DNA of 63,468 bases, the filler included, from Reticulomyxa filosa (Eukaryota > Protista > Foraminifera), in assembly GCA_000512085.1 (NCBI GenBank). It is 11 parts of 11 records of this genome, joined end to end, with 100 filler letters (N's around TTAATTAATTAA, not from the genome) between each part and the next. Parts side by side here need not be neighbours in the genome. Positions count along the whole stretch, not along the records: positions 46,842 to 62,368 come from ASPP01004662.1; 10 more parts are not named here. One strand, 5' to 3'. The notes below the pieces were generated by a model, which worked only from the letters and a program-made list of their open reading frames with translations, did not search any database and was not told the origin of the DNA. Within the stretch, counting starts at the first letter, position 1, and each line of letters opens with the position of its first letter. The position numbers and the translations under genes were made by a program. Of this stretch, positions 45,700 to 62,549 are shown piece after piece.

Positions 45700-46923
45700 A
45701 ATCATTTTGGCTTACATTTTTTTTGTCAATAAAAACTTTGTGTGGCTAAATTGCTGCGCTTTTTGTTGTTACCACTGTGTATTTTGTTTCTTGACAAGAT
45801 CATCTAATTTCTCTGAAAAAGTCTGCCATGCTTTATTGATGTTATTCATGGCCATTTTGATTATTTCAATGCAATGCTAAAAATATCACAACTTTAAATT
45901 AGAATTTTTCAAATTTTAAAACAAACTGAGCAAAAGGTATTTTATTTTTCATCGTGCTTCTTGAACGAAGGAACCTTGGAAAATATAACTAATGGAAACC
46001 ATTGATATTTTGTTCGTTTTCAAGCACTATTAAAAGAATAAATTTTTAAATATTATGTTGTGACGAAACTTTTTTAAGAATAAAATATTTGTAAATGTTT
46101 GAAATTAAATATTTTTTGGATGCTTTGTTCTGCTTGTAGTTAAGTCCTTGAAATTGACATCAATCAAAACAAAAGTCATGGAAACATATTTTTGCATTTT
46201 GATGTGTTTATCAATATATTGATGTTAATTGAGAATTACTTGCTATATTGAATAATTTTCATTTTCAGGCTTTCCAGATTGATAGTTTGAGTTAGACAAC
46301 GCAGAGATAACAATAGAAGTAATGTTTAAAAAAAAATCAAAGTTCACAATCACATCATTAAGACCAAATTCAAACTGTAGTCGATTGAGATTTTGATATA
46401 AATATTGAGATATCATTGATCCCACTTCTATGGACATGCTGAACATGTACGCAATCTCGACATGGTGGATCCAAAATAAAACTGTCGAAGTGCAATCTAG
46501 CAAAATATGCAGCAGTCCGAAATAAAAAAGAAAGAAATCCTTATTGTTTCTCAACAGGCCAGTAACCAAGAGCACAATATTCTTACACATATTGTATTAT
46601 CTTTTTTTGTTTAATTTAAATTAATTTTTTATTTTCGAATTCTTTTAAAGCTTTAATGGTTAAGAAATGCAAAGAAATTTAAAGGTATATCAAATCAAGA
46701 TAAATATATGAATATAGTATATTGCAAAAAAACTAACTACANNNNNNNNNNNNNNNNNNNNNNNNNNNNNNNNNNNNNNNNNNNNTTAATTAATTAANNN
46801 NNNNNNNNNNNNNNNNNNNNNNNNNNNNNNNNNNNNNNNNNAAAAAAAAAAAAAAAGACAAACAAACAGACAGACAGACAGACAAACTAAAGTAATACAC
46901 TTTGACTTGTTTCAATTTTCATA

Positions 46924-49543
46924 GAAACATAAAGTCGATGCACCAGGTCGTACGCATCCCTCGACGCATGCTATTACCGAGGCCAAGAGAGACGAAACGA
47001 CAGCTCCACGGACGTGGACGACGAAGAGACCCGAGTACCGTGACTTGGTTGCATCCCAAGTGCATGGGTTGTTACGCCCTTGTCACGCGCAGTTGGCAGA
47101 GCGCTTGTACTCGTTGTCCATCAACGGTGCTGACCTCCTCACTTTGAATTACAAACGCATTTTGGCGCTCACTGCTATTGCCACCAAAGACTTTGGTGAA
47201 CACGACTGGACAAGGATCGTGGAGCAACTCCAGTTGCCCCTCGTCACAATCACGGTAAAAAAAAAAAAAGTGTTTCTCTTCTTCAGTAGCATCACTTTCA
47301 ACAACAATAATAATAATAATATGTAATAATAATATGTAATGTTTATATTTGTGTGAACGAAACACACAGGACGAGGAGTTCAATACCAAACAAAAAGAAC
47401 AATGGAGTCCTAGCCACGTCTCTGCCGAACAAATGCAAAGACTAGAACAGAAGCAAACACGTGTCATCCAATCATTGGAAAAACTCTCCAATCAAGTGCA
47501 TCAAATTGCTTCTGACAAACACACATTTGAACAGTCGCAACGAGGACACACAGAAACAATCGCAACAACACAGAGCGTTGTGGATGCCGCGAAACTGGCA
47601 CACACGCAAGTGCAACAGCTTCTCGATGTGCGAAGCATGCAAGACACCATTGACAAACAGACACTGTCTCCTCAGATCTATCAGCTCAAACAGCGCCAAT
47701 GCAATGCCATCGATCGCTTGGAAGCTTTGTTGCAAGACAAGGCCATCTTTCCAAATCCACGAAATGCATTTTCCCATTTAATCCAAATTTCTGTCCACTC
47801 GGAGCAAGTCTCCTGGCAACAACTGGTGAGCCACTTCAAAAAAAGGGGGCATTTTAAAAAAATTGTTTATATTATATACATATATGTACATGTTAATGTT
47901 GTTTTTTTTTTTTAAAAAAAAAAAGGAAGACACACAAAACCGCGTTGGAAGCGAATGACGAGGAATCCAAAAGCAATGTCTCGAAAAAACAACAAAAGAA
48001 AGCAGAGCGAAAACAACGCAAAAAGGATGAACACGGACCAACGTCGGCCACAGAGCAAAAGAAAGGACAACCAACCAATGCGATAAATATCGCACAGCTG
48101 ACAAAGAAATACGAATCTCTGGCCACGAATTTGAAAGAACTGTTGCATGAGTTGTCTGCATTCAAAGAGAAAGGCAACGTGTGCAGTCAACCTGCCCAAT
48201 TGGTCGGTCCCAACAAGGGCAATGCATTGTCCAAACACACGAAAGCGTCGGCCGTGGGTACGTCCGAAGAGCTTAAACAACGTCAAAATAACAACTTGCA
48301 ACAACTGTTTCAGTTGGCCGTCGATGTAAAAGCCATTGCAAATGCACGCAACATTAAATTGCCAGAACAACAGTTTGTCGATCAATTACTTTTGGAAAAT
48401 ACCAAAGTTACAATATATACATATATAAATATATATATATATTTATATATGTGTGAAATGAATACAAATACAAATACAAATACAAAAAGGAACTGGAACA
48501 ACAACAAATAACTCTAATTCAAAGATTGGAGCATTTGTTGCAACAAGCTGCGCAATTGACTGGACAACCTGATGAATCGATTCGATCGAAACCGACCACA
48601 CAGCGCCACTCAAGACGCAGAAGTAGCTTGCTTGAGATCCCTGCAGATGTCATGACCGGATTATTGGAAAGTGACGAGGAAATCAAACTTCCCGAATCGA
48701 ATGGCGCAAAAGAGGCGAAGGAAGCACCACTGCCTTCGCAATCGAGACATGAAAAACGCCCCAGCATTGTCATCACCTCTGCCGCAGAGACTGAAAAAGA
48801 AATCCAAGGTTTGAGAAAACGTAAAAAATCATTGCAAATTGGCATTGCCCAATTGCGAAATATCTTGTCTGATTTGGGCGTCGTTGAAAGTGGAGATGGT
48901 GCCTTATTAACCATTGCACTTCAACAATTGAATGTCTTTAATCAAGTTTGCTTAAAAAAAAAAAATATATATATATATATATGTAATACATATAAACATA
49001 TATACATATATATTTATATATGTATATTGATTTTTATGTGCACAGAGCACAGACAAGACTACCTTGCCGCCATACATGGAAAGTGTAGTCGCAAGTGTCA
49101 CCAATCAAAGCGGAGAAATAAACTACAAAAAACTCTGTGAGTATTTAAGTGAACCAACAGCAACACGATCATTGCCAAACCGTTCTCAATGGGACGATTT
49201 TCGCAAATCGCTGGTCGAAGGCATGCACATGTCAAAATGTTTGCGCATTCATTATTTGTGGGATGACTGGAACGAACACAAAACACTTGAGCTTGAACAG
49301 TTTAGTCTCACTGAATTTATGAATGAAAATAGTCAGATTGAATTGTATCGCTTATTGCCACTTATTCGAAAAGAAATTGGAAAAGAATTTTCTTATCAAG
49401 ATCTTCTCGTCAAAATTGGAAGTGCAACTGGAACATGGGAAAAATCTGATGATTTTGTTCCAGTGTCGTTTGCTAAAGATGGATGGGCACAAGTGTTTAT
49501 TTGGTTTAAAAGTCGTGCTTTTCTCGCCAACAAAGCTCAATAA
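46924..49543 (+). CDS. Multi-exon hypothetical protein with a possible SAM-like segment, coiled coils and a degenerate EF-hand; 5' truncated
   Basis: Collinear ORFs 47045, 47349, 47945, 48526 and 49064 separated by TA-rich introns. INGADLLTL is SAM-like; TNQSGEINYKKLC is EF-hand-like. Confidence 0.55.
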
Positions 49544-50105
49544 ATGAAACACCAATATAAAAACAAATAAAGTATGAATTATTGCATACAGCAAATGTCC
49601 TCAGCTATCCTAATAAACACAACCAACAATCAACGACAATAATAATAATAAAAAAGATTACACAAAAATGAATCATTACAAAACATTTGCAATTTTTTAA
49701 AACAATATGCAGGAAAAAAAAAAACAAAATAAATGAGGAAAATTCTTTTTCAAGTTTTCTACAATTTATTATTGACTACTTTTTTGGGTCCGTCAGAATA
49801 ATAAATATATCATTTAACATTTTGAAACTGTAAATTTTTCGTGAATAAAATTGCAAACTCAGAACAAATAATTAACTTTCCTCATCTTTTGGGATTTATA
49901 ACATTGAAACATTTGTTAACTCAATTCTTTGTTTTGGTTTTTTATTATCACACGCGCTACTTTATAACCATTTTCATATCTCCCAATGATAATCTATCAA
50001 AGTAGCAGTTTGTTCTCTCTTCATTAACGGAAAGTTGGTTTTGAGCTAAAAAAGTTCAATTTTTCATCTGCCTGAGACTCCGGAAAAAATACAAAACAAA
50101 TTGGA

Positions 50106-51501
50106 ATGATCACTCTTAATGAAAAAGAAACTTCAATACAATTAGTTTGGTAATATTCATTCCAATATTTAGACTTTATCTCTTTCTCTTTAGTTGTTTT
50201 GACGCATTTCATGTGAATCAGTCAGAAAAAGAAGAAACTCAAATAATAATTCAATATTGGATTCGAATATTAAAGATTAAATTAGGATGGATCCATGAAT
50301 TTGACAAACTTGTTGTCAATTATGTTATGATTTTTTTGTTGTTTGTTTTTCATCTAAGATCAAGGTGTTATATTTATTTATTGTTATAATTAATAATCAC
50401 TATTTAACGCAGGCAACTACAGTATTCATGCTTGACACGTTTCGTTCATCATCTAAATTACTTAAAACATTCTCTGGACACACTGATTGTGTGTATAGTA
50501 TTGATTGCTTCACATTGGATTGTGATCAATTCATTTGTTCTGGATCAGATGATAAAACAGTTCGTGTATGGGATGTTGAGAACAACAAACAAATTCAATC
50601 ATTCAATGGACATTCAAGTTCTGTGTCTTGTGTGAAATTTTCTCCATATCACTGTCGCAATTATCGTCGTAATGTTATTTGTTCTGCATCACATGATAAA
50701 ACCATTCGCTTTTGGGATATCAAAGATAATCAACAATGGAAAATATGTAAAGAGCACACAAAGGGTGTTTGTGGAATTGAATTTTCACAATTTAATCGTG
50801 GTCGATATTTATGTTCTGCATCCGATGACAAAACAATTCGTTTATGGGATATTGAAACATACAAATCATTACATGTTTTCAATGGGCATGAATATGCTGT
50901 TTGGTGTATAGCTTTTTCATCATTGCAAAGCTATAATAATAAAAATAAGAATAATAGTATTGGAGTGATTGGTGGTAATGGATACACAATTTGTTCTGGA
51001 TCAAGTGATAGAACTATTCGTGTATGGGATATTGAAACAACTAAACAATTGATTGTATTCAAAGGACATAGAGATGCAGTAGTGAGTGTAAAGTATGGAT
51101 CAAACGAATTAGGAATTAATGGTGGCACAAATACAATATTATCAGGATCACAAGATAACAATGTTTGTTTGTGGGATATTCGTTCCAAGAAACAAACTCA
51201 AGTATTCAAAGGACATAGAAATGGTATAAATATTGTCGAATACTCATCATTTGTAATGGATAATAACGATATTGGTGATAGTTCCAATATAATATGTTCT
51301 GGATCAAGTGACAATACAATTCGATTTTGGGACATTCGATCAAACAAAGAATTGCATGTAATTAAAGAAAATAATGGAATACATTGTCTTACATTTTTAC
51401 AATTAAAGAAAGAAAAAAAAGGCAAATGTAAAGATGACCGTGATTGTGATATTTCTCTGTGTTATTGTTTGTCCAATGGCACTATTCACACTTGGGGATA
51501 A
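50106..51501 (+). CDS. WD40 repeat protein (7 blades) with conserved N-terminal helical motif; 3 exons
   Basis: MITLNEKETSIQL / SEKEETQIIIQYWIRILKIKLGWIHEFDKLVVNY / ATTVFMLDTFRSSSKLLKTFSGH..., then repeated GH...ICSGSxDxTIRxWD units ending IHTWG*. Confidence 0.93.
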
Positions 51502-51754
51502 TCTAATAAAAAAAATTGTTTACTTGATTTGACACTTTTTAAGTGAGTTCAATGAAGTAAATTTTTTTATTAATGACAAAATAATATATTTCAGGCATTT
51601 CTATTCCTCATTAAACGTTCTGTTTGAAAATATAGACTAGTTTTTAATTTTTTCTGGAGTGCATCCATTTTTAAAAATTATGTGGACCAGCTTTTTCTGC
51701 AATTTACGGACGCCTAAAATACCAGAGGTATTTTATCTTTCCAATTTAAGCAAA

Positions 51755-52160
51755 AGAATGTATCAATTGATGAAATGTGTACATCATTTAATTGTTATAA
51801 AAAATGAAAGCATTCAAAGATCTTCCAAAAATATTTATCATTGATACTTATCGTGGTGAAAATGCTCCAAAATCTTATGAAATTGTAATGTGAGGAGATG
51901 AGATATTATATGGGCATAACGACGATGGATTTTTGATCATTTGGTCAACTACTAAAGGACATCGGGTCGCTGACTTGTCATTATTGAGTGAATCTATGAA
52001 AGATATTGTATCGTCAAAATATAAATGCAGTTGTCCATTCAAGCAAATGTTGCAAGAAATTAGGACAGAAATCCGAAACAAGAAAAATAGTGAATGGTAT
52101 TGCGTGGAAAGTCAAGACACCACGGATTAGAACATCATTTTTCAACAAAAATCTATGTAA
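51755..52160 (+). pseudogene. 5'-truncated caspase-fold (peptidase C14) pseudogene, paralogue of the 56557-57539 domain
   Basis: VSIDEMCTSFNC(fs)MKAFKDLPKIFIIDTYRGENAPKSYEIVM*GDEILYGHNDDGFLIIWSTTKGH...EWYCVESQDTTD*NIIFQQKSM*. Catalytic Cys is replaced by Tyr; two premature stops and one frameshift. Confidence 0.88.
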
Positions 52161-52248
52161 AATTTTAATTTTTGTAATAAGTAAGTAGCATTTTTTTTTT
52201 TGGAATTAAATCACGCAAATCAATTTTTTATTGCTGAAAAAAATAAGG

Positions 52249-53627
52249 CTATCCCCAAATATGAATTGAGCCATCTTTTGAACCATAATACAAATTAATA
52301 TCGCATCCACTATAATTATTACTTTTTCTGTTTTTTATTATTTGTACAAATTTAAGACACATTATTCCATCATTTTCATCGTCTCCGTTGATTATATGTA
52401 ATGCAATCTTATTTGATCGAATATCCCAAAATCGAATTGTATTATCAATTGACCCAGAACATATCACATTTGAATGACCACCAATTTTGATATTACTTAC
52501 TACAAATGGTGAAAATTCAACAGCATTCACGACATTTGTATGTCCATTGAACATTTGAATTTGCTGACCAGATCGAATGTCCCATAAGCGAACACTACTA
52601 TCATTTGATCCAGATAATATTGTATTTATTAATTCATTTGATCCATATTTTACACTTCTAATCCAATCCTCATGTCCACGAAATGTAATGAATTGTCTGG
52701 TTGTTTCAATATCCCATACACAAATAGTTTTATCAAATGATCCAGAACAAATTGTATATCCATTTCCACCAATCAAACCAATTTTACTATTTTTATCATA
52801 GTCACTCTTGCTATTGTTATTGCTTTGCAATGGTGAAATATCAACACATCTGACAGTATCTGAGTGTCCACGGAAAATATGTAATGATTTAGATGTCTCA
52901 ACGTCCCATAAATGAGTGGTATTGTCAAATGACCCAGAACACAAATATCTACCACCATTAAATGGTGAAAATTCAATGCTACAAATACCATATTGGTGTC
53001 CATTGAATACTTGCAATTGTTGATTATCTTTGATATCCCAAAAACGAATGGTTTTATCATTTGCTGAAGAACAAACGACAATACGGTGATTGTTATAATG
53101 ATAATATTGTGAAAATTTCGCACAATACACATAGTTGGAATGTCCATTGAACGATTGAATTTGTTTATTGATATCTACATTCCATATACGAACTGTTTTA
53201 TCAGCTGATCCAGAACAAATGAATTGACCACAATCTAATGTGAGGCAATCAATACTATTCAAATAACCATTGTGTCCAGTGAAAGTTTTGAGTAAATTGG
53301 ACGATGAACGGAATACATCAAGCATGAACAATTTAGTTCCCTGGAACATGAATAAAACAACAAATAGATATTTATCATTGAACAAAGCAAAAAATGCATG
53401 AGCTTAACATATTTATCAATAAGTCTATCAAAATCCTGGATCCATCCTAATTTAATTTTTAATATTCTGATCCAATATCTGATAATTACTTTGACTTCTT
53501 CTGTTGACAGATCTGTCTAAAGTCAATCGTCAAGTCTTAAATACTACCTTTCTGAAGGATAGATTGAAATGAAACATACCACTGATTGTTGTGTTGACGA
53601 CGCCTTTTTACTGATAGGATTTCCCAT
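52249..53627 (-). CDS. WD40 repeat protein (7 blades) with a possible N-myristoylation signal; 3 exons
   Basis: MGNPISKKASSTQQSV / TEEVKVIIRYWIRILKIKLGWIQDFDRLIDKY / GTKLFMLDVFRSSS... ending IHIWG*. Confidence 0.93.
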
Positions 53628-54938
53628 TTGCTTTGTCTTAGATGAACATGACGCGAAATTTAAAAGGGCTGTCAACAAGTAGACCAAAACCTTTGTTATG
53701 TTATATGATTTTTTAAAGAGACAAGCAACCAAAAATTAAAATTAAAATTATTTTCGTTACTGTTGAAATCACATAGCCTATCAGAAATTGTGCAATACCA
53801 GTTTATAACTTCTCCTCAAAGTAGTTATATCTCCTAATTTATGAAAAGTTGATTTTTCATTCAGTATTGACACACTACATTGTGTTATTTAAAAAATGAA
53901 TTGCTGTTCAGAAATAAGTATGTGAATAACACTTTTGAAATATCTTCATTATCAAAAAAATTTTTTGCAGTGAAATTGGAGGGGAAAAAGCATACCAAAC
54001 GACATAGCCCATATGCACAGTACTTATTCCATTTGATCTTTAATGATTAATTTATGACTTACATCTTGTGAGTTTGCAATGCTTCTAAATGTAAATTGAA
54101 TAAATTAATAACAGCAGCGACAATTGAATTGTCATTGAAAATACTTACATTACTTTTAAACAAAAAAATTTCTTTGTTTTTTCATAAATTCAAAGCAACT
54201 TTTCTTTGTTGTATTCAAAACGATTTCTAGTTTTGTACATAAGGATTTAATTCTTCAGTGTTTTCTATTGATTGTTTTTGTAATCTAAATTCATGCAATG
54301 GAAAGCTTTATAATTTTTAGATTTTTTGTCATGATGATTGAAGAAAAACTTTTTTTCTTGCACACGGTCTTCAAAAAATTTTTTATAATTCGGGCATGTC
54401 AAAAAATATCTACAAAAAATTTCTACTCCAAAAAATATTTTGTGTTAACAAATAATATTTTTCAATACTCGTTTCCCTTTATTTGTAAAAAAAAAATAAA
54501 AATTGCACAATATCGACGTGCATTGAAAATGATTCATAAGATTTTTCTACTTTCATAAAATAATGCACAACAGATATAAAGGTTCCCATAACATCTTTCG
54601 GACAAGGAAAATATATTTTTGTTGTTCTTAAAAGTGTATTTTTAAGTTGTAACATTTTAGAGGAGCTAGATTTTTTAAATCTGTAAGAAATAATTCATAT
54701 TTTTTCTGTAAAGAGCTTGATGTGCGTATTGAGAAGATGCAGTGTTTACATCCGCAATGGAAGATTGCGTACAATTTAAAAAATGCTCAAAAAATCATGA
54801 CAAAAATTTGTTTTGTTTATTACAAATACTTTTGCTGAATAATTTATTGCTGTGCAAAATACGTTTTTGCTGTTTTTCGTTTTTTCAAAAGTCACTCCAC
54901 ATCCCCCTTTTTTAAAAAAATTCAGCAATATTAACAAC

Positions 54939-57539
54939 ATGGCTAATCAAAATACAACACAAAAATCTCTTGAAAAACAAACTAAACAAAGTCAACATAT
55001 TATTACTTCAACTCCCTTTCAAAGTTTGAATGCTTTGCCAAACTCACTTTGGCAATCTCAGTGTGTGCTACACAAATACGAAATCCTCATTTGTGGAGGT
55101 TATAAAAAAAGGGATTGCTATTCTTATCATACACTCAAAAATGAATATAAGTTTATCTGTGAGTATCCAAATGATGTCGCGTTATGGGGACACTGTGTAG
55201 TGAAGCTGGTAGATAACAATAAAAACAGTAACGAAATCACTTTATTGTCTTTTGGTGGAGATTATAAACATACATTGGTGATGAAATATATGAGTGTTTG
55301 GAGTAATGAAAATGATGAAAATGAATCAAATAAATTAAAGGAATTAAATAATCACAATCAATGGATTCCCTTCAAAGACAATGACGGTAATCCAATTCAA
55401 ATTGGAAGAGATTATGATAATTATTGGGGAGTGCGTGCAGTGATTGGTGGAAGCAACAATCATTTGTTATTTATTGCTTTTAAAGATAACAACATTAGTG
55501 TATTTGATTTAAATACATTTCAATTTATTAAACATAGTAATATTCCAACTGATGATTTAGTTTATTATCATTGTTTTGTATTAAAATCAGAAAATGTACA
55601 AGAAGAAAAAATAAAAAAATTATGAAATGGTATTGTTTTGTAAAAAGACAGGATTATCAATAGAATATGATGAAGATGATAACACTTTTCAATTTTGCAA
55701 TCTACCTGTTTGTAAGAGTATTGCGGTATTCTCTCATTATGCTTATGTGTGTATTAATGATGTTATCTTGTTCTTTGGTGGAAGTAATTTAGATGTTGTT
55801 TCAAAATCAGTGCATAAGTATTCAATTCGAGAAAACAAATGGATGACATTTCAAAATACTTTACTCAGTCCTTTAGGAGATTGTGTTGCAATATTGAGTG
55901 AAGACAATACGTATGTGCATATTATTGGGGAATCGACACACGTGAAAACTCAAGTAAGTGAATTATTGAGTGAAGAAGAAATGAAAGTGGAAAAAATAGT
56001 AAATAGAGATGGAAAAGGACAACAAAACAAATTGAAAAAGGATGACAATGTTGAGCATTGCTTTTTTTCTCTTAGGAAACTGTCAACTAAGAAAAAGTAA
56101 TAAATTAATAAATTATAATTTATATCATTTTTTTTTTTTAATAGGAGACAAAGGAAAGAGACGAACAAACAAGCAAGAAAAGACAAAAAGAAAGTAGTGT
56201 CAATGTTATGAAATGCTTTCTTATGTCTTTTTTTTTCATTTTACTGCATTATATGTTAAACAAAAAAAAATAGGAAAAAAACAAAAAATGGATGAAATGG
56301 TGGAACCAAAGAGAACAAAGAGATAAAACAGAGATCATTCAAAAATTTAAAATAATGTCAAGTGAACAGTTTCGAGTATGGCTACTGAGTGAATGCAAAT
56401 GGAAACGTATAATCACAAAAGATGATATTGATTTTATTTGTTTTTCCATTGATTTTTATCTTGATTTTGTAATACCTAATCAAGGAAAAGGAGTTATTAA
56501 TTATGTAATCTTTTAATCTTACTTTTGATCAAATGATAATAACAAATATAACATAGTTGCTCGCGTATGTGATAATTGACGAAATAAAAAAATTAATAAA
56601 AATGAAAGAATTGACATTTGAAGAACTTCTTCGTCAAAGTTATAATTGTTTGAAGTTAGAACATTTCCAAAAAATGAATAATGAATACTTAAAATTGCAA
56701 TTAGTTAATATGAATGATAATGTTATTGAATCTGATAAAGATGTGACAAAAGAATTTGAGACTAATGAACCTACCTTTAAGATAACTTGGATCCCGTTTC
56801 AACAACTAATAATAATTGGAAAGACAAAAACAATAAAAAATGCATTAGTGATAATGATTGCAATTAGTGAATATATGGATAAAACATTGCGTAATCTTCC
56901 AAATGTGAATGAAAAGGATGTTACGAATTTTAAGCAATTATTTGAAGAAGAATTAAAGTACGATTTTATATGTAATCCATCCCCAAAAATGACAAAACAA
57001 GATTTACAATCATTTTTTGCCAAATTAAATGCAAACTATGATCTTCATGAAAATACACGCAAATACGATGGCTTGATTGTGATTATTTGTGGACATGGCG
57101 AAGATGGAAATGTGTTTGTGACAAGTGACGGAAAACAAGTATCAATTGACAAAATACGATCTTCATATAATTGCAATGAAATGGAATCATTTAAAGATTT
57201 ACCTAAAATTTTTATTATTGACTGTTGTCGTGGTGAAAATATTCCAAAATCATATGAACTTACAATGAGAGGAAAAGAAATTTACATGGACACAAGGATG
57301 ATGGCTTTTTGATTATTTGGTCAACTACACAAGGACACAAAGTAGTTGACTTGTCGTTGTTGAGCAAAAGCATGAATAAGGTTGTCATGTCCAAATATAA
57401 GAATGGTTATCCGTTCAAGCAAATGCTGCAGTATATTAGAACAGATATTCGCAGCATCAAAAGTAGTGAATGGTATTGTGTGGAGAGTCAAGACACAACT
57501 GATTATGATATCATCTTTCAACAAAAAAAATCTGTGTAA
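54939..57539 (+). CDS. Kelch-like propeller, charged linker, helical domain, PB1/ubiquitin-like domain and caspase-fold protease in one gene; 4 exons; two 1-nt homopolymer frameshifts (sequencing error or recent pseudogenisation)
   Basis: Kelch-like blades (ILICGGY, LLSFGG, VIGGSN, ILFFGG, VHIIG). Three phase-0 GT-AG introns at about 56050-56144, 56205-56273 and 56493-56556 keep frame into KNALVIMIAISEY...IICGHG (His 57094)...PKIFIIDCCRG (Cys 57226)...FLIIWSTTQG...CVESQDT. Extra A near 55615; missing T near 57281, confirmed by the paralogue reading EILYGHNDDGF. Confidence 0.8.
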
Positions 57540-57559
57540 AAGATTATTTTTATAAGAGG

Positions 57560-58100
57560 TCAGGTAGTTCATTTGATACTTTTATCTATTAATTGTACTA
57601 AAACACAAATTAATATTACAACAACAGTCATCATTTCTTTTTTTTTTAATTGTATAAATTTGAGAATTTATTCTATCATCTACAATATTATTCCTTTGAT
57701 CACATATAATTCATTCTTGTTTGGTCGAATATCACAAAAAAGAATTGTATTATCACATGATTCAGAATATATCATATATGAAAAAAATGCAAAGAAAATT
57801 TGTTGCAGTTCTGAAAAAAGATTATTTGATTTTTTGATTGAGCAAACAGATGATGGTTACTTTAGGGATGGTACAATAGGCTGCAAAGAAAACTGCAACA
57901 CCTAAATGGCACCCTTATGAGGAGAATCGATTTTCTCAATGAAAAATAAACATTTAGGCATTAATTTTTTTAAAAAATATCTACAAATCTTGTAGTTTTA
58001 AAATATAAACTTTTTTTTTCTTTGTTCAATTATTTTTTCATATATTTAAATGGTTTGATCGACTGATTCAGGTCAAATTGTATATCCATTATTACAAATT
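57560..58100 (-). pseudogene. WD40 relic of the same family, tail-to-tail with the caspase gene
   Basis: Reverse complement of 57590-57775 reads IYSESCDNTILFCDIRPNKNELYVIKG...LKFIQLKKK...CNINLCFST; of 58065-58095 reads NNGYTI*PES (compare GNGYTICSGS). Confidence 0.7.
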
Positions 58101-58759
58101 ATTTTTGTCCTTACTGATTTTTATTAATGGCATATGAAAGTTATTGTAACTTGTCGAAGTAATGTATTGAATGAAGATATTCAAAATTATTTTAATTAAA
58201 TCATACATCAATGATGTATCTTGACCATTTAAAATGAACAATGGAAGAAAGTAAAACAAAAAAAGATACCAACAAGGTCACTACTGGTTGTTTGTTTGTG
58301 TATCACTGTTCTTTTTATATTTATCCTACGCTTGTATTGCCACAAAAAGAAAATTGGAAACGATGACGGTCCTTTAGTGTAACTTACTTTATTCATTTTT
58401 CATTAATTTCTTTAAATAAATAACTCAAATTTTTACATATCAACTTATTCATGGTTAGTACTTCAATTTTAGGGACTTTTGGCCTTAATCAAATATAGAC
58501 AATGTAAGACAATAAATTGAAAGCCAGCCTTTGTTTGTTTATCAGCTGGAATTTTTGCGATTTGAAAACAGAAAAATGTTAAACTTTTCGCTCTATGGCC
58601 AGAATTCGCACGAAATTCTTGTTTTGGACAAGACAATAAGTGCTTACTGATAAAATGAAAATCATCAAAATGTAACATATGAAACAATTGTTACATTTGT
58701 AAAATAATAAGATCATTAATGCACAGATTTAATATTTTTTTAGAGTATTTTAAAATTTT

Positions 58760-60123
58760 AATGTGAAAGTTGGAAGCTGATGTAAATAAAATATTTAGCA
58801 TAGATGTTTCACCAGATGATAATACTATTGTATCATTGTAGTGATACTACTTACGCCACAATGGAGTCAGTATGACTCCAAATATACAAATTATTTCTTT
58901 TTAATTTAATTTCAAAAACATATTCTTACTTTTCTTAAAACGGGCTTTTCCGCTCCAGGTTCTCTACATCATGTTCAAATGAAATAATCAAAGTATGGGA
59001 TTGCATAATAAAGCGTCAAGCAATCAAAGTATAACAGAATGAAAGGAGTATATTTGTTTAATAATACACATAAACTCATTGCTTATTTATGTATTTGAAA
59101 GGTTACGATATTTTGTCAATGATAGCTGCGTTGATATTTTTTTTTTGATTTTTTTCTTGAGATCTTCTTAGATAATGAAATTTTGAACTTTTTAATATTG
59201 TGTTCAAAAAAATTCTGAGAAACAAATTGAACAACAAGTGAATTCTTTCAATAAAAAAAATGTTCAAAATTAAACAAGTTTTTTAATATTGAAGGAAAAC
59301 TATGCTACAAAAATTTTATTTTCAAAAATTTATTCCAGCATTATTTTTATTATTTTATCATTTTCTTTAACAATTTTGTTTTTTTCTTTTTGTTCAATGA
59401 CACAATCGATGCAATAAACTAGCATATAAAACTAATTTATTCAATGGACCAGAATTAGGTTAGTTAATAAATTACTCTTTTTCTTCCGAGCTGAATAGAA
59501 TATTTTGTTTCATCTGAATATTGCACAAATTTTGGAACATAATTACAATATACAAAAAATCAAATGATACACATATCTAAAGAATGCTTCTAATGCTCAT
59601 TGGCTTTTCATATTCATTCAAAATAAACAATATTTTATAGTGCAATTTTTTGTGTAAAATCCGAATATAAAAGAAAAAATCAATTTTGGAATGTCTGTAA
59701 TCAATAAAAGCGCATTTTTCATTAAGCTTACTTTTTCCATTCAGATAGGCTGTGCAAAAAAAAACAACGAAAGATGAAAAAAAGCGAAAAATAAAAAAAT
59801 TTGCCAGGAGAACCATTGGTGTCAACAATCCACAACAACAACATCACACCACATAAGATATACGCTTTCATAATTAAATTAATAAATAACAATAACACAG
59901 TTTATTACACAATCTATACATTGTGCTTTGTTGATTTTCGAAAACTTGTTTTCTAATAATTCTGCTTTCGTGACTAATTACAAATATAATGTTTATGACA
60001 TGCATTTGACAGTAGACCTAGCTCCATTAGTGAACGATGAAATGTCGTTTGTGGCATTGACTTATATCCTGATGGTTCAAAACTAGTTCATGTTCTAATG
60101 AAAACAATTTGATTATGTGGTAG
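58760..60123 (+). pseudogene. Scattered relics of a second WD40 subfamily (SPDG type)
   Basis: About 58770-58850 KIFSIDVSPDDNTIVS; about 58965-59005 TSCSNEIIKVWD; about 60050-60123 VCGIDLYPDGSKLV(fs)CSNE..I*LCG*. Confidence 0.5.
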
Positions 60124-60619
60124 TGATGACGGTAAATTGTTGATTTAACTGAGGATAATATTGTAGATTATATTTGGAAAGTAGGCAATCAAACTGGTTT
60201 ATCAATGAAAGGAAGTATTTGGAGAGATTCAAAGGTTTGGAACATAACAAAAAATTCTTGCGAAACAATGTGGTGGAGTATTTTGATGTTTTTGTTTTTT
60301 TACTTGTGTGAATAGAACTTGTTTTTTAAGTATTCTTATTAAATACAGTTATTCTAAGCAAAATAAAGTGTGACAGAAATTAACTGATTCTTGTTTTTCT
60401 TGAGATTATCTTAGATTATATAAGATAAAAATTCCTTGATAATGTGTCATATTGTCCTTTTCACTTTATACTGTTTTGAAGGTTCGATACAAAAAACAAT
60501 AGCAAATAGATAAAACACATTTCGATGCTTGCGTTCAATCAAATCAAACAAGTTTAATTTTCTTTTAATCAAACTTTTCAAACAAAGACAATTTCATTTT
60601 TTATTCAACAAAAAGGAAA

Positions 60620-61855
60620 TTATCCCCAAATACGAATGTGACCTTTCTCTGAACCATAATACAAATTCAAATCATATGTGACATTCTTTGTCTTATCTTT
60701 CTTTTTCAATTTAATAAATTTAAGACAAGTTATTCCGATATCTTCTTCTTTATCTCCTTCAATCACATACAACTCATTTTTATTTGATCGAATATCCCAA
60801 AAACGGATTGTATTATCCCATGATCCAGAACATATTACGCTTGAATTCTTTATTACAAATGGTGAATATTCAACAGCATACACCCAGTTATTGTGTCCAT
60901 TGAACACTTGAATTTGTTGACAAGATCGAATATCCCACAAACGAACACTGTTATCTGCAGATCCAGATAATATTGTATTCAATAATTCATTTGATCCATA
61001 TTTTGCACTATTCACATGACTGCCATGTCCTTTGAATACATTCAATTGTTTAGTTGTTTCAATATCCCATATTCGAATGGTATTATCATATGATCCAGAA
61101 CAAATCGTATATCCATTTCCACCAACCACACCAATATTATTAACTTTATTATTATTGTCATTGTTGTCATTGCTTTGTAATGGTGAAATATCAACACAAC
61201 AAATATAAGATTTATGTCCTCTGAAAACATGTAATGATTTTGATGTTTCAATATCCCATAAACGAATTGTTTTGTCCCATGATCCAGAACACAAATATCT
61301 ACCACCATTAAATGGTGAAAATTCAATACCACGAACATCACTAGTGTGTCCATTAAATGTTTGTAATTGCCCATTATGTTTGAAATTCCAAAAACGAATG
61401 ATTTTGTCATGTGATGAAAAACAAATGACATTTTGATGATGACTATGATAACAATATGATGAAAATTTTACACAACTGACATAACCTGAACTCATATTGA
61501 GTGATTGAATTTGTTTGTTGTTATCAACATCCCATATACGAACTGTGTTATCATATGACCCAGAACAAATGAATTGGCAATCATCAAATGTTGAATAATC
61601 AATACTATACACCCGATTAGTATGTCCAACTAATGTATTGATTAATTTGGATGATGAACGAAATGTGTCAAACATGAAGAAAGTAGACACCTATGTAAAT
61701 AGTATTGGAATATTTGATTGCCATTTAAAAAAAAAAGAACAAATGAACTAACATAATTGACAACGAGTTTGTCAAAATCTTCAATCCATCCTAATTTAAT
61801 GTTTAATGTTCGAATCCAATAATGAATAATTATTTGGGTTTCTTCTTCTGTTGAC
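60620..61855 (-). CDS. WD40 repeat protein (7 blades), third paralogue; first exon and start unresolved
   Basis: STEEETQIIIHYWIRTLNIKLGWIEDFDKLVVNY / VSTFFMFDTFRSSSKL... open through to HIRIWG*. Confidence 0.9.
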
Positions 61856-62549
61856 TGTTTCAGTCATAAAGCAAAATGAAAAAAAAAACCTAAAAAAAAA
61901 ACAGCTTAAACGAAACTTTCATTACTAAGCTAAAGTATCTTCTTCTTTTTCCTTGAGATAATCTTTGATGATGCAAAGATGATGAAAAAGACGCTTTCAA
62001 CTTTTTTTTTAGACCACGAAGCCAATAAAAAGTTGAAATGAATTTCTTTTATTTAATAAATATAAACTTTGTAATGATAAAGTATTTACAAGCAAAACTT
62101 TGTGTCTTATTGAACTTATAATGACATCAATTATTTATACATATACAAATGTTGTTTTTTTTTTCTATTGGAAAGAAATCTCTAAAACTCATAAATACGT
62201 TCAAGAAAAAGGCAGTAATGATTTTGTCGTAATTTGGTGAATAATAAAAGAAAACAAAATGGATAATTTTCCATTGTCTCAAAAGTACAAAATGTTAGCA
62301 TTTTAATCCACTTTATCCTTGTCCCAAAAACACAAAAGGGGAAACAAAAATTCAGTGTAATCATCAGCNNNNNNNNNNNNNNNNNNNNNNNNNNNNNNNN
62401 NNNNNNNNNNNNTTAATTAATTAANNNNNNNNNNNNNNNNNNNNNNNNNNNNNNNNNNNNNNNNNNNNAAGAAAGGTTTGGTAAATAGATAATTATATAT
62501 ACATATATATATTTATATATATATATATATATATATAAACAGACACAAA

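Follow-up and report, generated by a model that had tools for sequence, protein, structure and literature searches.

The window analysed here is the whole stretch of 63,468 nucleotides (nt) joined from records of the Reticulomyxa filosa assembly GCA_000512085.1, and the gene under study lies on its plus strand at 54939–57539, where a Kelch part and a protease part of the caspase fold are encoded in the same direction. This gene is RFI_05290 of R. filosa in GenBank, for which a single-chain model is deposited: the protein of 751 amino acids (aa), P0315, maps onto 54757–57309 in blocks of 100% identity and is listed by both GenBank and UniProt among the uncharacterised proteins, under the name 'Caspase family p20 domain-containing protein' (P0xxx denotes proteins and L0xx loci). 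The gene is one of a multi-copy family of foraminifera; it consists of three or four exons and carries two one-base frame breaks in A-runs. The piece in which it lies (46842–62368, record ASPP01004662.1) is AT-rich, with a GC content of 0.25–0.31 around the gene, and its caspase open reading frame (ORF) matches only R. filosa proteins of this assembly in a protein search, at 40–75% identity. All searches and fold predictions were performed with single exon pieces of the window or with database proteins. The explanation that we regard as likely is that of one gene for a Kelch–linker–helical–beta-grasp–protease chain, together with a proposed scheme of assembly and of cleavage after Arg or Lys.

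The coding sequence is spread over the ORF pieces A–E (Table 1). A preliminary description, made from the DNA alone, had joined four fragments into one protein through three phase-0 introns and two homopolymer corrections; matching GT-AG introns and the breaks in A-runs are indeed present, and other splice models keep the frame too. The start Met at 54939 is backed by similar N-termini of paralogues, and the 5′ extension of the GenBank model from 54757 was rejected because the paralogue starts correspond to this Met. The GenBank model bridges the first frame break by an 88-nt intron (55560–55647) and stops at the second break, without the entire p10-like part; this intron was also rejected, as it would take out about 29 codons of blade 4 that P0304, L004, and L005 read through as coding sequence. 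The N-terminus reads Met-Gly-Asn-Gln-Ser in the paralogues L002 (4951) and L005 (~3598), a possible N-myristoylation signal, and Met-Ala-Asn-Gln in the window copy. At the other end of exon 1, conservation of the linker ends at ~56055, and the paralogues diverge downstream into T-rich sequence.

That the Kelch, helical, beta-grasp, and C14 parts form one chain is well supported by comparison with paralogues, because the order recurs, the gene at L010 is clean, the ORFs of L005 and L009 are uninterrupted, and both the L006 ORF and Bolivina P0145 carry the combination. L002, L004, and L005 have the pieces in the same order, A-B-C-D-E, separated by gaps of 52–150 nt. A single ORF of 538 codons in L005 (3544–5157) and another of 386 codons in L009 (3–1160) each run through the Kelch part, the linker, and the helical module, and the gene models P0002, P0004, P0018, and P0019 join the helical module to the beta-grasp domain and the protease. 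P0304 (758 aa, source name 'caspase-8') corresponds by exact mapping to three exons of L010 (1501–2574, 2652–2879, and 2947–3918) that are separated by two phase-0 GT-AG introns of 77 and 67 nt and contain no frame break; the preliminary description had counted the lack of an intact Kelch–C14 paralogue, together with genomic indels, among the grounds for refuting its reading, and P0304/L010 is such a paralogue. Thirteen annotated R. filosa proteins combine Kelch and C14 (P0049, P0050, P0054, P0059, P0071, P0302, P0303, P0304, P0308, P0310, P0311, P0315, and P0316), and with the three split loci L002, L004, and L005, the same order is found at no fewer than 16 (i.e., at least 16) R. filosa loci. 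Additionally, an environmental JGI contig, L006 (sample 3300030740, 2268 nt, GC 0.32), consists of a single 731-codon ORF with Kelch and C14, in which no poly-A tail was seen when one was looked for. The same architecture was sought in other foraminifera and is present in one protein of Bolivina argentea (P0145, from EukProt), a species studied by gene expression (PMC8153729); its Kelch part resembles that of R. filosa only faintly.

Table 1. Features of the Kelch–protease gene and of neighbouring genes in positions of the window
Feature	Position	Strand	Remarks
ORF piece A	54939–55622	+	frame 0
ORF piece B	55615–56097	+	frame 1
ORF piece C	56274–56504	+	frame 0
ORF piece D	56557–57309	+	frame 1
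ORF piece E	57258–57536	+	frame 0; stop codon 57537–57539
Exon 1, first part, predicted six-bladed Kelch propeller	54939–55953	+	frame 0 until the A7 run, then frame 1
Frame break 1, A7 run	55613–55619	+	Lys-rich loop of blade 4; frame 0 stop at 55623–55625; frame 1 opens at 55615
Exon 1, end, Glu/Lys-rich linker	55954–56049	+	conserved at protein level with L002, L004, P0304
Intron 1 (paralogue-guided)	56050–56144	+	95 nt, AAT/GTTGAG ... AATAG/, phase 0
Candidate micro-exon	56145–56204	+	20 charged codons; open in frame 0, flanked by AG and GT
Intron 2	56205–56273	+	69 nt, AAT/GTTATG ... AAATAG/, phase 0
Exon 3, predicted three-helix module	56274–56492	+	69% identical to P0304 residues 365–428
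Intron 3	56493–56556	+	64 nt, GGA/GTTATT ... CATAG/, phase 0; alternative donor 56505
Exon 4, first part, predicted ubiquitin-like beta-grasp, PB1/CIDE-N-like	56557–56829	+	57% identical to P0004 (alignment A4)
Exon 4, rest, Peptidase_C14	56830–57539	+	p20-like part, intersubunit linker, p10-like part, stop; PF00656; 65% and 80% identical to P0304
Catalytic His codon, in C-G-H-G	57094–57096	+	nearly invariant H262 (alignment A2), aligned to the caspase-3 His
Asp-Cys-Cys, in D-C-C-R-G	57220–57228	+	catalytic Cys at 57226–57228, C306 in A2; Asp at Cys-2
Met-Arg-Gly, candidate self-cleavage site	57265–57273	+	intersubunit linker; conserved basic-Gly pair
Frame break 2, A4 and A3 runs	57273–57283	+	between the Arg-Gly pair and the G-H-x-D-D-G-F motif
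WD40 propeller gene, single ORF	50365–51501	+	WD40 E ~1e-46
WD40 propeller gene, single ORF	52249–53385	-	WD40 E ~1e-46
WD40 propeller gene, single ORF	60620–61690	-	WD40 E ~1e-46

The introns were placed by comparison with paralogues, and their exact positions are to be read as predictions. The donor of intron 1 (AAT/GTT) is annotated likewise in L007, and the homologous site in L010 reads GAA/GTTAAG. The acceptor of intron 2, ATAG/GAAAAA, is common to the window gene and L011. For intron 3, the homologous donor in L010 is GAA/GTTAAT, and the acceptor before L-x-A-Y-V-I is used in the gene models P0001, P0004, P0304, and P0315. The micro-exon has a homologous counterpart in L002 but none in the intact paralogue L010, and it may be skipped; the frame is kept either way, and skipping it gives the two-intron structure of L010. 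The GenBank splice model, with introns at 56097–56144 (phase 2), 56194–56273, and 56493–56556, also keeps the frame. The donor type GTT-A/G of the window introns is found in annotated or clean introns of L007, L010, and L001 as well. Donors of the family often read GTT-A/G-A/T rather than GTAAGT (window 56050, 56205, and 56493; L010 2575 and 2880; L007 ~1949), and the introns measure 40–95 nt; such donors and short introns may be a general trait of R. filosa introns.

Pfam Kelch families match pieces A and B at threshold only (20.2 bits for Kelch_1, whose cut-off is 20.1, and 21.6 for Kelch_4, whose cut-off is 21.6), and the paralogues that are 50–68% identical to the window pieces carry several of these families. 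The fold was taken from an AlphaFold model of residues 1–345 of the paralogue P0071, to which the Kelch pieces of the window are 62% and 68% identical and in whose alignment of 51 sequences they were entered as rows; the model has a predicted local distance difference test score (pLDDT) of 93.9 and a predicted template modelling (TM) score of 0.91. The top Foldseek matches of this model are all Kelch propellers, headed by KLHDC10 (expectation value (E) 4.8e-13), followed by LZTR1, NS1-BP, KLHDC3, KLHL12, and Keap1. The Kelch part is thus predicted to be a six-bladed beta-propeller, and the Kelch label of the preliminary description agrees with both the Pfam matches and the modelled fold. The Kelch substrate receptors (KLHDC2/3/10, KLHL12, Keap1, and LZTR1) share six blades, about 340 residues, Foldseek E of 5e-13 to 1e-9, and TM of about 0.6 with the propeller of the window family. 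However, identity to them is just 10–15%, and the window-family Kelch stems from a lineage-specific R. filosa expansion of hundreds of copies; the module family counts 395 R. filosa proteins at E ≤1e-3 within the 190–604 aa range alone. Neither BTB/BACK nor BC-box cullin-docking domains gave a Pfam match in the window pieces or in the paralogues.

The structure of the two middle domains is that of a model of residues 1–160 of the paralogue P0004 (34 sequences). The helical module is modelled as three helices with pLDDT 70–79 and contains the motif KKW-M-KWW and a conserved WLL...KWK, its conservation extending upstream of the in-frame Met. In the paralogue P0049 (L008), itself a Kelch-caspase protein, the three-helix module occurs twice in tandem at residues ~320–470 (K-N-W-T-K-W-W..., K-K-W-I-K-W-L...). 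The beta-grasp domain, residues 69–148 of P0004, reaches pLDDT 93–98. PB1 domains (NBR1, p40/p67phox) occupy ranks 1–7 of its Foldseek matches, with the aPKC-Par6 complex 9ejl at rank 4, and CIDE-N and ubiquitin-like domains follow, all at E ≥1.2e-3. VIA-align, run over 48,161 chains, gives the MEKK3 PB1 (Z 8.3), the MAP2K5 PB1 (8.2), the DREP3 CIDE-N (8.1), Par6 (8.0), and p62, NBR1, and Bem1 (7.9), with the PB1 and CIDE-N matches together spanning Z 8.3–7.4, and places generic ubiquitin-like domains at Z 7.0–7.5. Seven of the ten nearest rows in the ESM Atlas are PB1 clusters; an ESM Atlas feature search gave no usable match. The per-domain AlphaFold and Foldseek check proposed earlier, made here on paralogue models, thus ranks Kelch propellers and PB1 domains first.

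Sequence profiles give no sign of a PB1 kinship. None of the 34 family members matches Pfam PB1 or CIDE-N in the helical and beta-grasp module at E ≤1, the scan giving noise only, and hhalign of the module against a genuine foraminiferal PB1 (P0146 of Bolivina) returns a probability of 0.1, i.e., no match. The earlier label 'PB1-like' is therefore kept for what the structural matches support and dropped for what the profiles do not: it holds as a statement about the modelled fold and not as one of family membership. An acidic E-S-D-E-D-V stretch (E-S-D-K-D-V in the window) is conserved in the beta-grasp domain, with D128 present in at least 90% of alignment A4, and a K-x-L-I-K-M-K strand is conserved as well. 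By its position at strand 4 and helix 2, the acidic stretch resembles the OPCA acidic motif of PB1 domains, to which it may be equivalent. The domain shares the beta-beta-alpha-beta-beta-alpha-beta grasp fold with PB1 (p62, Par6/aPKC, MEKK3, and NBR1) and CIDE-N (DFF40/45, DREP, and FSP27) but has no Pfam match to either and no profile match to a genuine foraminiferal PB1, and its polymerisation is putative.

The protease part scores 54.6 bits (E 1.6e-14) for Pfam Peptidase_C14 (PF00656) at 56557–57312, well over the cut-off of 21.4. A search of solved sequences with a profile of 17 family members gave 155 matches, headed by procaspase-3 (E 4.8e-11) and caspase-3 (both ~5e-11), and caspase-3, -6, and -7 lead among the best 60 of these 155 matches. 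The caspase-fold label is in keeping with a Pfam score above the gathering score and with caspase-3 as best solved relative; likewise, the His/Cys dyad described earlier as intact is found to be so, as CGHG and DCCRG align with the nearly invariant H262 and C306 and with the active-site strand of caspase-3. An exhaustive search of 1.84 billion representatives yielded 2867 relatives of the protease, of which the nearest after R. filosa come from Nonionella stella and Bolivina argentea.

The residues around the catalytic Cys bear on the specificity of the enzyme. HMMER aligns the I-I-D-x-C-R-G of the family with I-I-Q-A-C-R-G of caspase-3; at least 85 of ~100 relatives have D-x-C-R, and two have Q-x-C-R. 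In caspase-3, the P1 Asp is anchored by R64, Q161, and R207, and MALT1, which cuts after Arg, has D365, D462, and E500 at S1, with D462 at the place of Q161 (PMC4626109). After W-S-T-T-x-G, in V-x-D (Asp following W-S-T-T-x-G-x-x-V-x), 54 of 57 carry the Asp, and in the V-K-E-x-D motif at the start of helix 1, Asp is found in 51 of 56; the R207-bearing loop of caspase-3 is a four-residue insertion relative to the family. Furthermore, RG is present in 28 of 38 complete intersubunit linkers, mostly 14 residues after the Cys, and KG stands there in most others, including that of Bolivina. The linker is otherwise variable, and the Arg-Gly falls two residues from the D175 maturation site of caspase-3 in the profile alignment. 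Since Asp replaces Gln at Cys-2, acidic residues are conserved nearby, and Arg/Lys-Gly is kept in the linker, the protease most likely cuts after Arg or Lys, and would do so first at its own linker Arg-Gly. The S1 pocket is probably of the para-/metacaspase type, and Asp-specific caspase activity is doubtful.

Analogous to MALT1 (C14B), the window family has Asp at Cys-2, where MALT1 has D462 (PMC4626109), with a predicted acidic S1 pocket and basic specificity, and as for MALT1 and the metacaspases, the protease is part of a multi-domain protein and is expected to need assembly for activity. In contrast to MALT1, the C-R-G after the Cys is caspase-like and the best listed solved matches are caspases; no death or Ig domains of the MALT1 type were found by Pfam around the protease in the window pieces or paralogues. 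Metacaspases read D-x-C-H-S-G at this strand.

The helical, beta-grasp, and protease modules recur as a cassette. Elsewhere in R. filosa, its N-terminal partner is a TPR array in P0053, P0305, and P0306, a zinc finger of the TRAF type in P0066, and a Ras-like domain in P0312; outside this species, the foraminiferal protease is preceded by a true PB1 (P0146, Bolivina) or by MATH-SAM (P0147, Nonionella). Several of these N-terminal partners of the foraminiferal caspase-like domain (TRAF/MATH, SAM, and PB1) are typical of animal death and immune signalling. This range of partners would suit an effector cassette to which different domains for sensing or docking can be attached. In P0001 (L001 1393–2581 and 2880–3101), the closest protease paralogue with 75% identity, an unrelated first exon replaces the Kelch and helical modules; another Kelch gene begins ~300 nt past its stop.

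In the working that we propose, the Kelch propeller would be the end that binds a ligand or partner, and the beta-grasp domain, in which acidic and basic patches are conserved, would join the chains in the head-to-tail manner of PB1 and CIDE-N. The proximity of the chains would then switch on the protease, which would cut after Arg or Lys, beginning with the linker Arg-Gly. An assembly role of the beta-grasp domain is the most economical one because its nearest folds are homotypic head-to-tail assemblers; sensing, oligomerisation, and induced proximity are here argued by analogy. The Apaf-1/caspase-9 apoptosome is alike in concept, in that a beta-propeller for sensing is combined with a module for assembly and with a protease of the caspase fold that proximity activates. 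However, the window family would have all of these on one chain, with Kelch instead of WD40 repeats, no CARD, and putative assembly through the beta-grasp domain. Pfam found no NB-ARC, NACHT, or STAND P-loop NTPase in the window pieces or full-length paralogues, and no death fold (CARD, DED, or DD) in any piece or paralogue; the helical module is predicted to have three helices and not to be a six-helix bundle. With neither a STAND ATPase nor a death fold, the comparison is one of logic, not ancestry, and the 'compact apoptosome' of the preliminary description, if meant as a homologue, has to be given up in favour of an analogy. Prokaryotic caspase homologues (orthocaspases and CHAT-type proteins) fused to WD40 or TPR also unite repeats with a protease of the caspase fold in a single chain. 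TPR versions of the cassette exist in R. filosa too, whose genes are, unlike the prokaryotic fusions, eukaryotic and spliced; we know of no Kelch partner or interposed beta-grasp module described for the prokaryotic fusions.

Several observations weigh against the explanation as a whole. The splicing of the linker is ambiguous, with three frame-preserving models, and at the homologous loci L002, L004, and L005 GenBank has two genes instead of one. The resemblance to PB1 is one of structure and not of sequence, with Foldseek E of 1e-3 or weaker and a VIA-align Z of about 8, about 1 above generic ubiquitin-like folds. In the S1 pocket, only Cys-2 is aligned securely, as R64 precedes the aligned stretch and R207 lies within the caspase-3 insertion. 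Finally, both frame breaks stand in the deposited assembly and may be real, and the second lies in short runs (A4 and A3), where sequencing errors are rarer.

The frame breaks raise the alternative that the window copy is a pseudogene with real frame shifts, which would yield at best a shortened Kelch fragment and leave the function to intact paralogues. At the first break, L004 and L005 are continuous in one frame, and L002 is broken at the equivalent site in an A12 run. At the second, frame 1 continues to a stop at 57310–57312 and frame 0 is open from 57258; the C14 region is coded in frame 1 to ~57279 and in frame 0 from 57285, the alignment with P0304 follows frame 1 up to 57282 and frame 0 from 57285 with one residue between, and the paralogues are uninterrupted across the site. 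Both the large and the small subunit regions of the protease are present, 65–80% identical to P0304, the one-base break of the window copy lying between them. Decay would be consistent with the presence of both breaks in the assembly, the second in runs of merely 3–4 A, with frame breaks at many paralogue loci too, with a blade 6 that is six residues shorter than that of P0304, and with a large family in which copies have clearly been lost, e.g., the caspase relic at 51801–52151. However, both breaks are single-base and within A-runs, the first coincides with the poly-A break in L002, which suggests a systematic length error, and similar breaks are scattered over paralogue loci of the same assembly. 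The similarity to the intact P0304 is spread evenly over the gene (59–80% identity), and no nonsense codon has arisen, and no catalytic or nearly invariant residue has been lost, in ~2.2 kb (~730 codons) of AT-rich sequence with 27–31% GC. The lack of nonsense codons and the contrast with the true relic make decay of the window copy less favoured; the frame breaks are more likely homopolymer assembly errors, and the pseudogene, though deserving serious attention, is the less probable account by some distance.

A live single-chain gene might still serve neither death nor defence. The Kelch propeller could tether an enzyme of limited proteolysis to a cytoskeletal or cargo partner for reticulopodial remodelling, with a beta-grasp domain that docks and does not polymerise. 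At least 395 R. filosa proteins belong to the Kelch module family, the majority lacking a protease; Kelch propellers serve broadly as platforms for protein binding (the structural matches include KLHL, KLHDC, and LZTR1 adaptors); and nothing in the analysis links the gene to death or immunity. However, the cassette follows TPR, TRAF zinc-finger, and Ras-like domains, and PB1 and MATH-SAM occur elsewhere, partners such as signalling hubs typically carry; moreover, the nearest folds of the beta-grasp domain, PB1 and CIDE-N, are known homotypic assemblers. We consider tethering unlikely, and prefer the scheme in which the chains assemble and thereby activate the protease.

A still smaller probability attaches to a true Asp-specific caspase, orthologue-like to animal caspases and acting in an apoptosis-like death with Kelch as its prodomain. 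The fold, the His/Cys dyad, the F-I-I-x-x-C-R-G strand, the p20–linker–p10 order, and a conserved, cleavable-looking linker site near the Asp175 position are common to the window family and the animal caspases (C14A, caspase-3). The best solved relatives are caspase-3, -6, and -7, the C-R-G at the Cys matches the one in Q-A-C-R-G, and Klim et al. 2018 placed Reticulomyxa proteins on the animal caspase branch with a bootstrap of 92–95% (PMC5982838). However, the family has Asp in place of caspase-3 Gln161, like MALT1 with its D462; the R207 position has no aligned Arg, and its loop is four residues shorter in the family; Asp is conserved close to each of the two remaining S1 positions; and a conserved Arg/Lys-Gly takes the place of the Asp175 processing site. 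Additionally, the N-terminus of the family consists of Kelch, helical, and beta-grasp domains, with no CARD or DED. Cleavage after Arg or Lys thus remains the preferred prediction.

Least probable is a pair of neighbouring genes, a Kelch gene ending at the stop 56098–56100 (the frame-1 ORF stops at 56098 unless intron 1 is removed) and a caspase-like gene starting at the in-frame Met 56292, as in the split models of L002, L004, and L005, for the L005 and L009 ORFs run uninterrupted across the supposed border, L006 is a single 731-codon ORF, L010 a clean three-exon gene, the gaps are just 52–190 nt, GenBank models this locus as a single chain, and the Met from which some models start has a conserved K-K-W in front of it and gives way to Ile or Thr in P0059 and P0049.

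Other genes of the same piece belong to repeat families as well. The three WD40 genes (Table 1) are paralogous, with products of 356–378 aa, and WD40 genes adjoin Kelch-caspase genes elsewhere (L005 6981–9359 and L008 3518–4886); WD40 and Kelch seem to be expanded repeat families that are interspersed in R. filosa. The caspase relic at 51801–52151 (+) lies ~300 nt downstream of the WD40 gene 50365–51501 on the same strand. It is ~78% identical to residues 639–755 of P0304, has two in-frame stops and a catalytic Cys changed to Tyr (I-I-D-T-Y-R-G), and retains only the C-terminal third of the protease. The GC-richer region 46842–49543 (+; 0.35–0.45) contains several Gln/Glu/Lys-rich ORFs of 160–200 aa with no Pfam match and is probably a multi-exon gene cut off by the contig end.

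Caspase homologues of Reticulomyxa are already known (PMC5982838, PMC10565124), and these caspase-type proteases have been cited for a pre-animal origin of caspases and used as outgroup for animal caspase trees (PMC5982838, PMC10959488). No paper linking foraminifera, caspase, and Kelch was found in a literature search, nor was any discussion of the domain make-up and active-site pocket of the Reticulomyxa proteases found in the searched literature. The preliminary description knew of no characterised Kelch-caspase; none has been characterised, but the architecture itself is already annotated, in RFI_05290 and at least 12 more proteins. What is new is the evidence for a genuine fusion that occurs repeatedly, the fold assignment proposed for the middle domains, the picture of a modular family, and the para-/metacaspase-like pocket that is predicted. 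The cassette of helical, beta-grasp, and protease modules sits behind interchangeable repeat and signalling domains, of which Kelch is the commonest. If assays confirm the Arg/Lys specificity, the label 'caspase outside animals' will need revision.

A broader proposal, offered tentatively, rather unlikely and more doubtful than the gene structure on which it builds, is that foraminifera evolved single-chain sensor–polymeriser–protease switches of their own, in which a fast-diversifying repeat domain (Kelch in the present gene, the other partners elsewhere) senses, the beta-grasp domain polymerises, and an Arg/Lys-specific protease, activated by proximity, cuts itself at the Arg-Gly linker. If this were true, the 'Reticulomyxa caspases' that root animal caspase trees would not be Asp-specific caspases, and a logic like that of apoptosomes and inflammasomes would have been invented independently in Rhizaria. 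Should the beta-grasp domain polymerise, the family would offer a simple one-gene model of protease activation by induced proximity.

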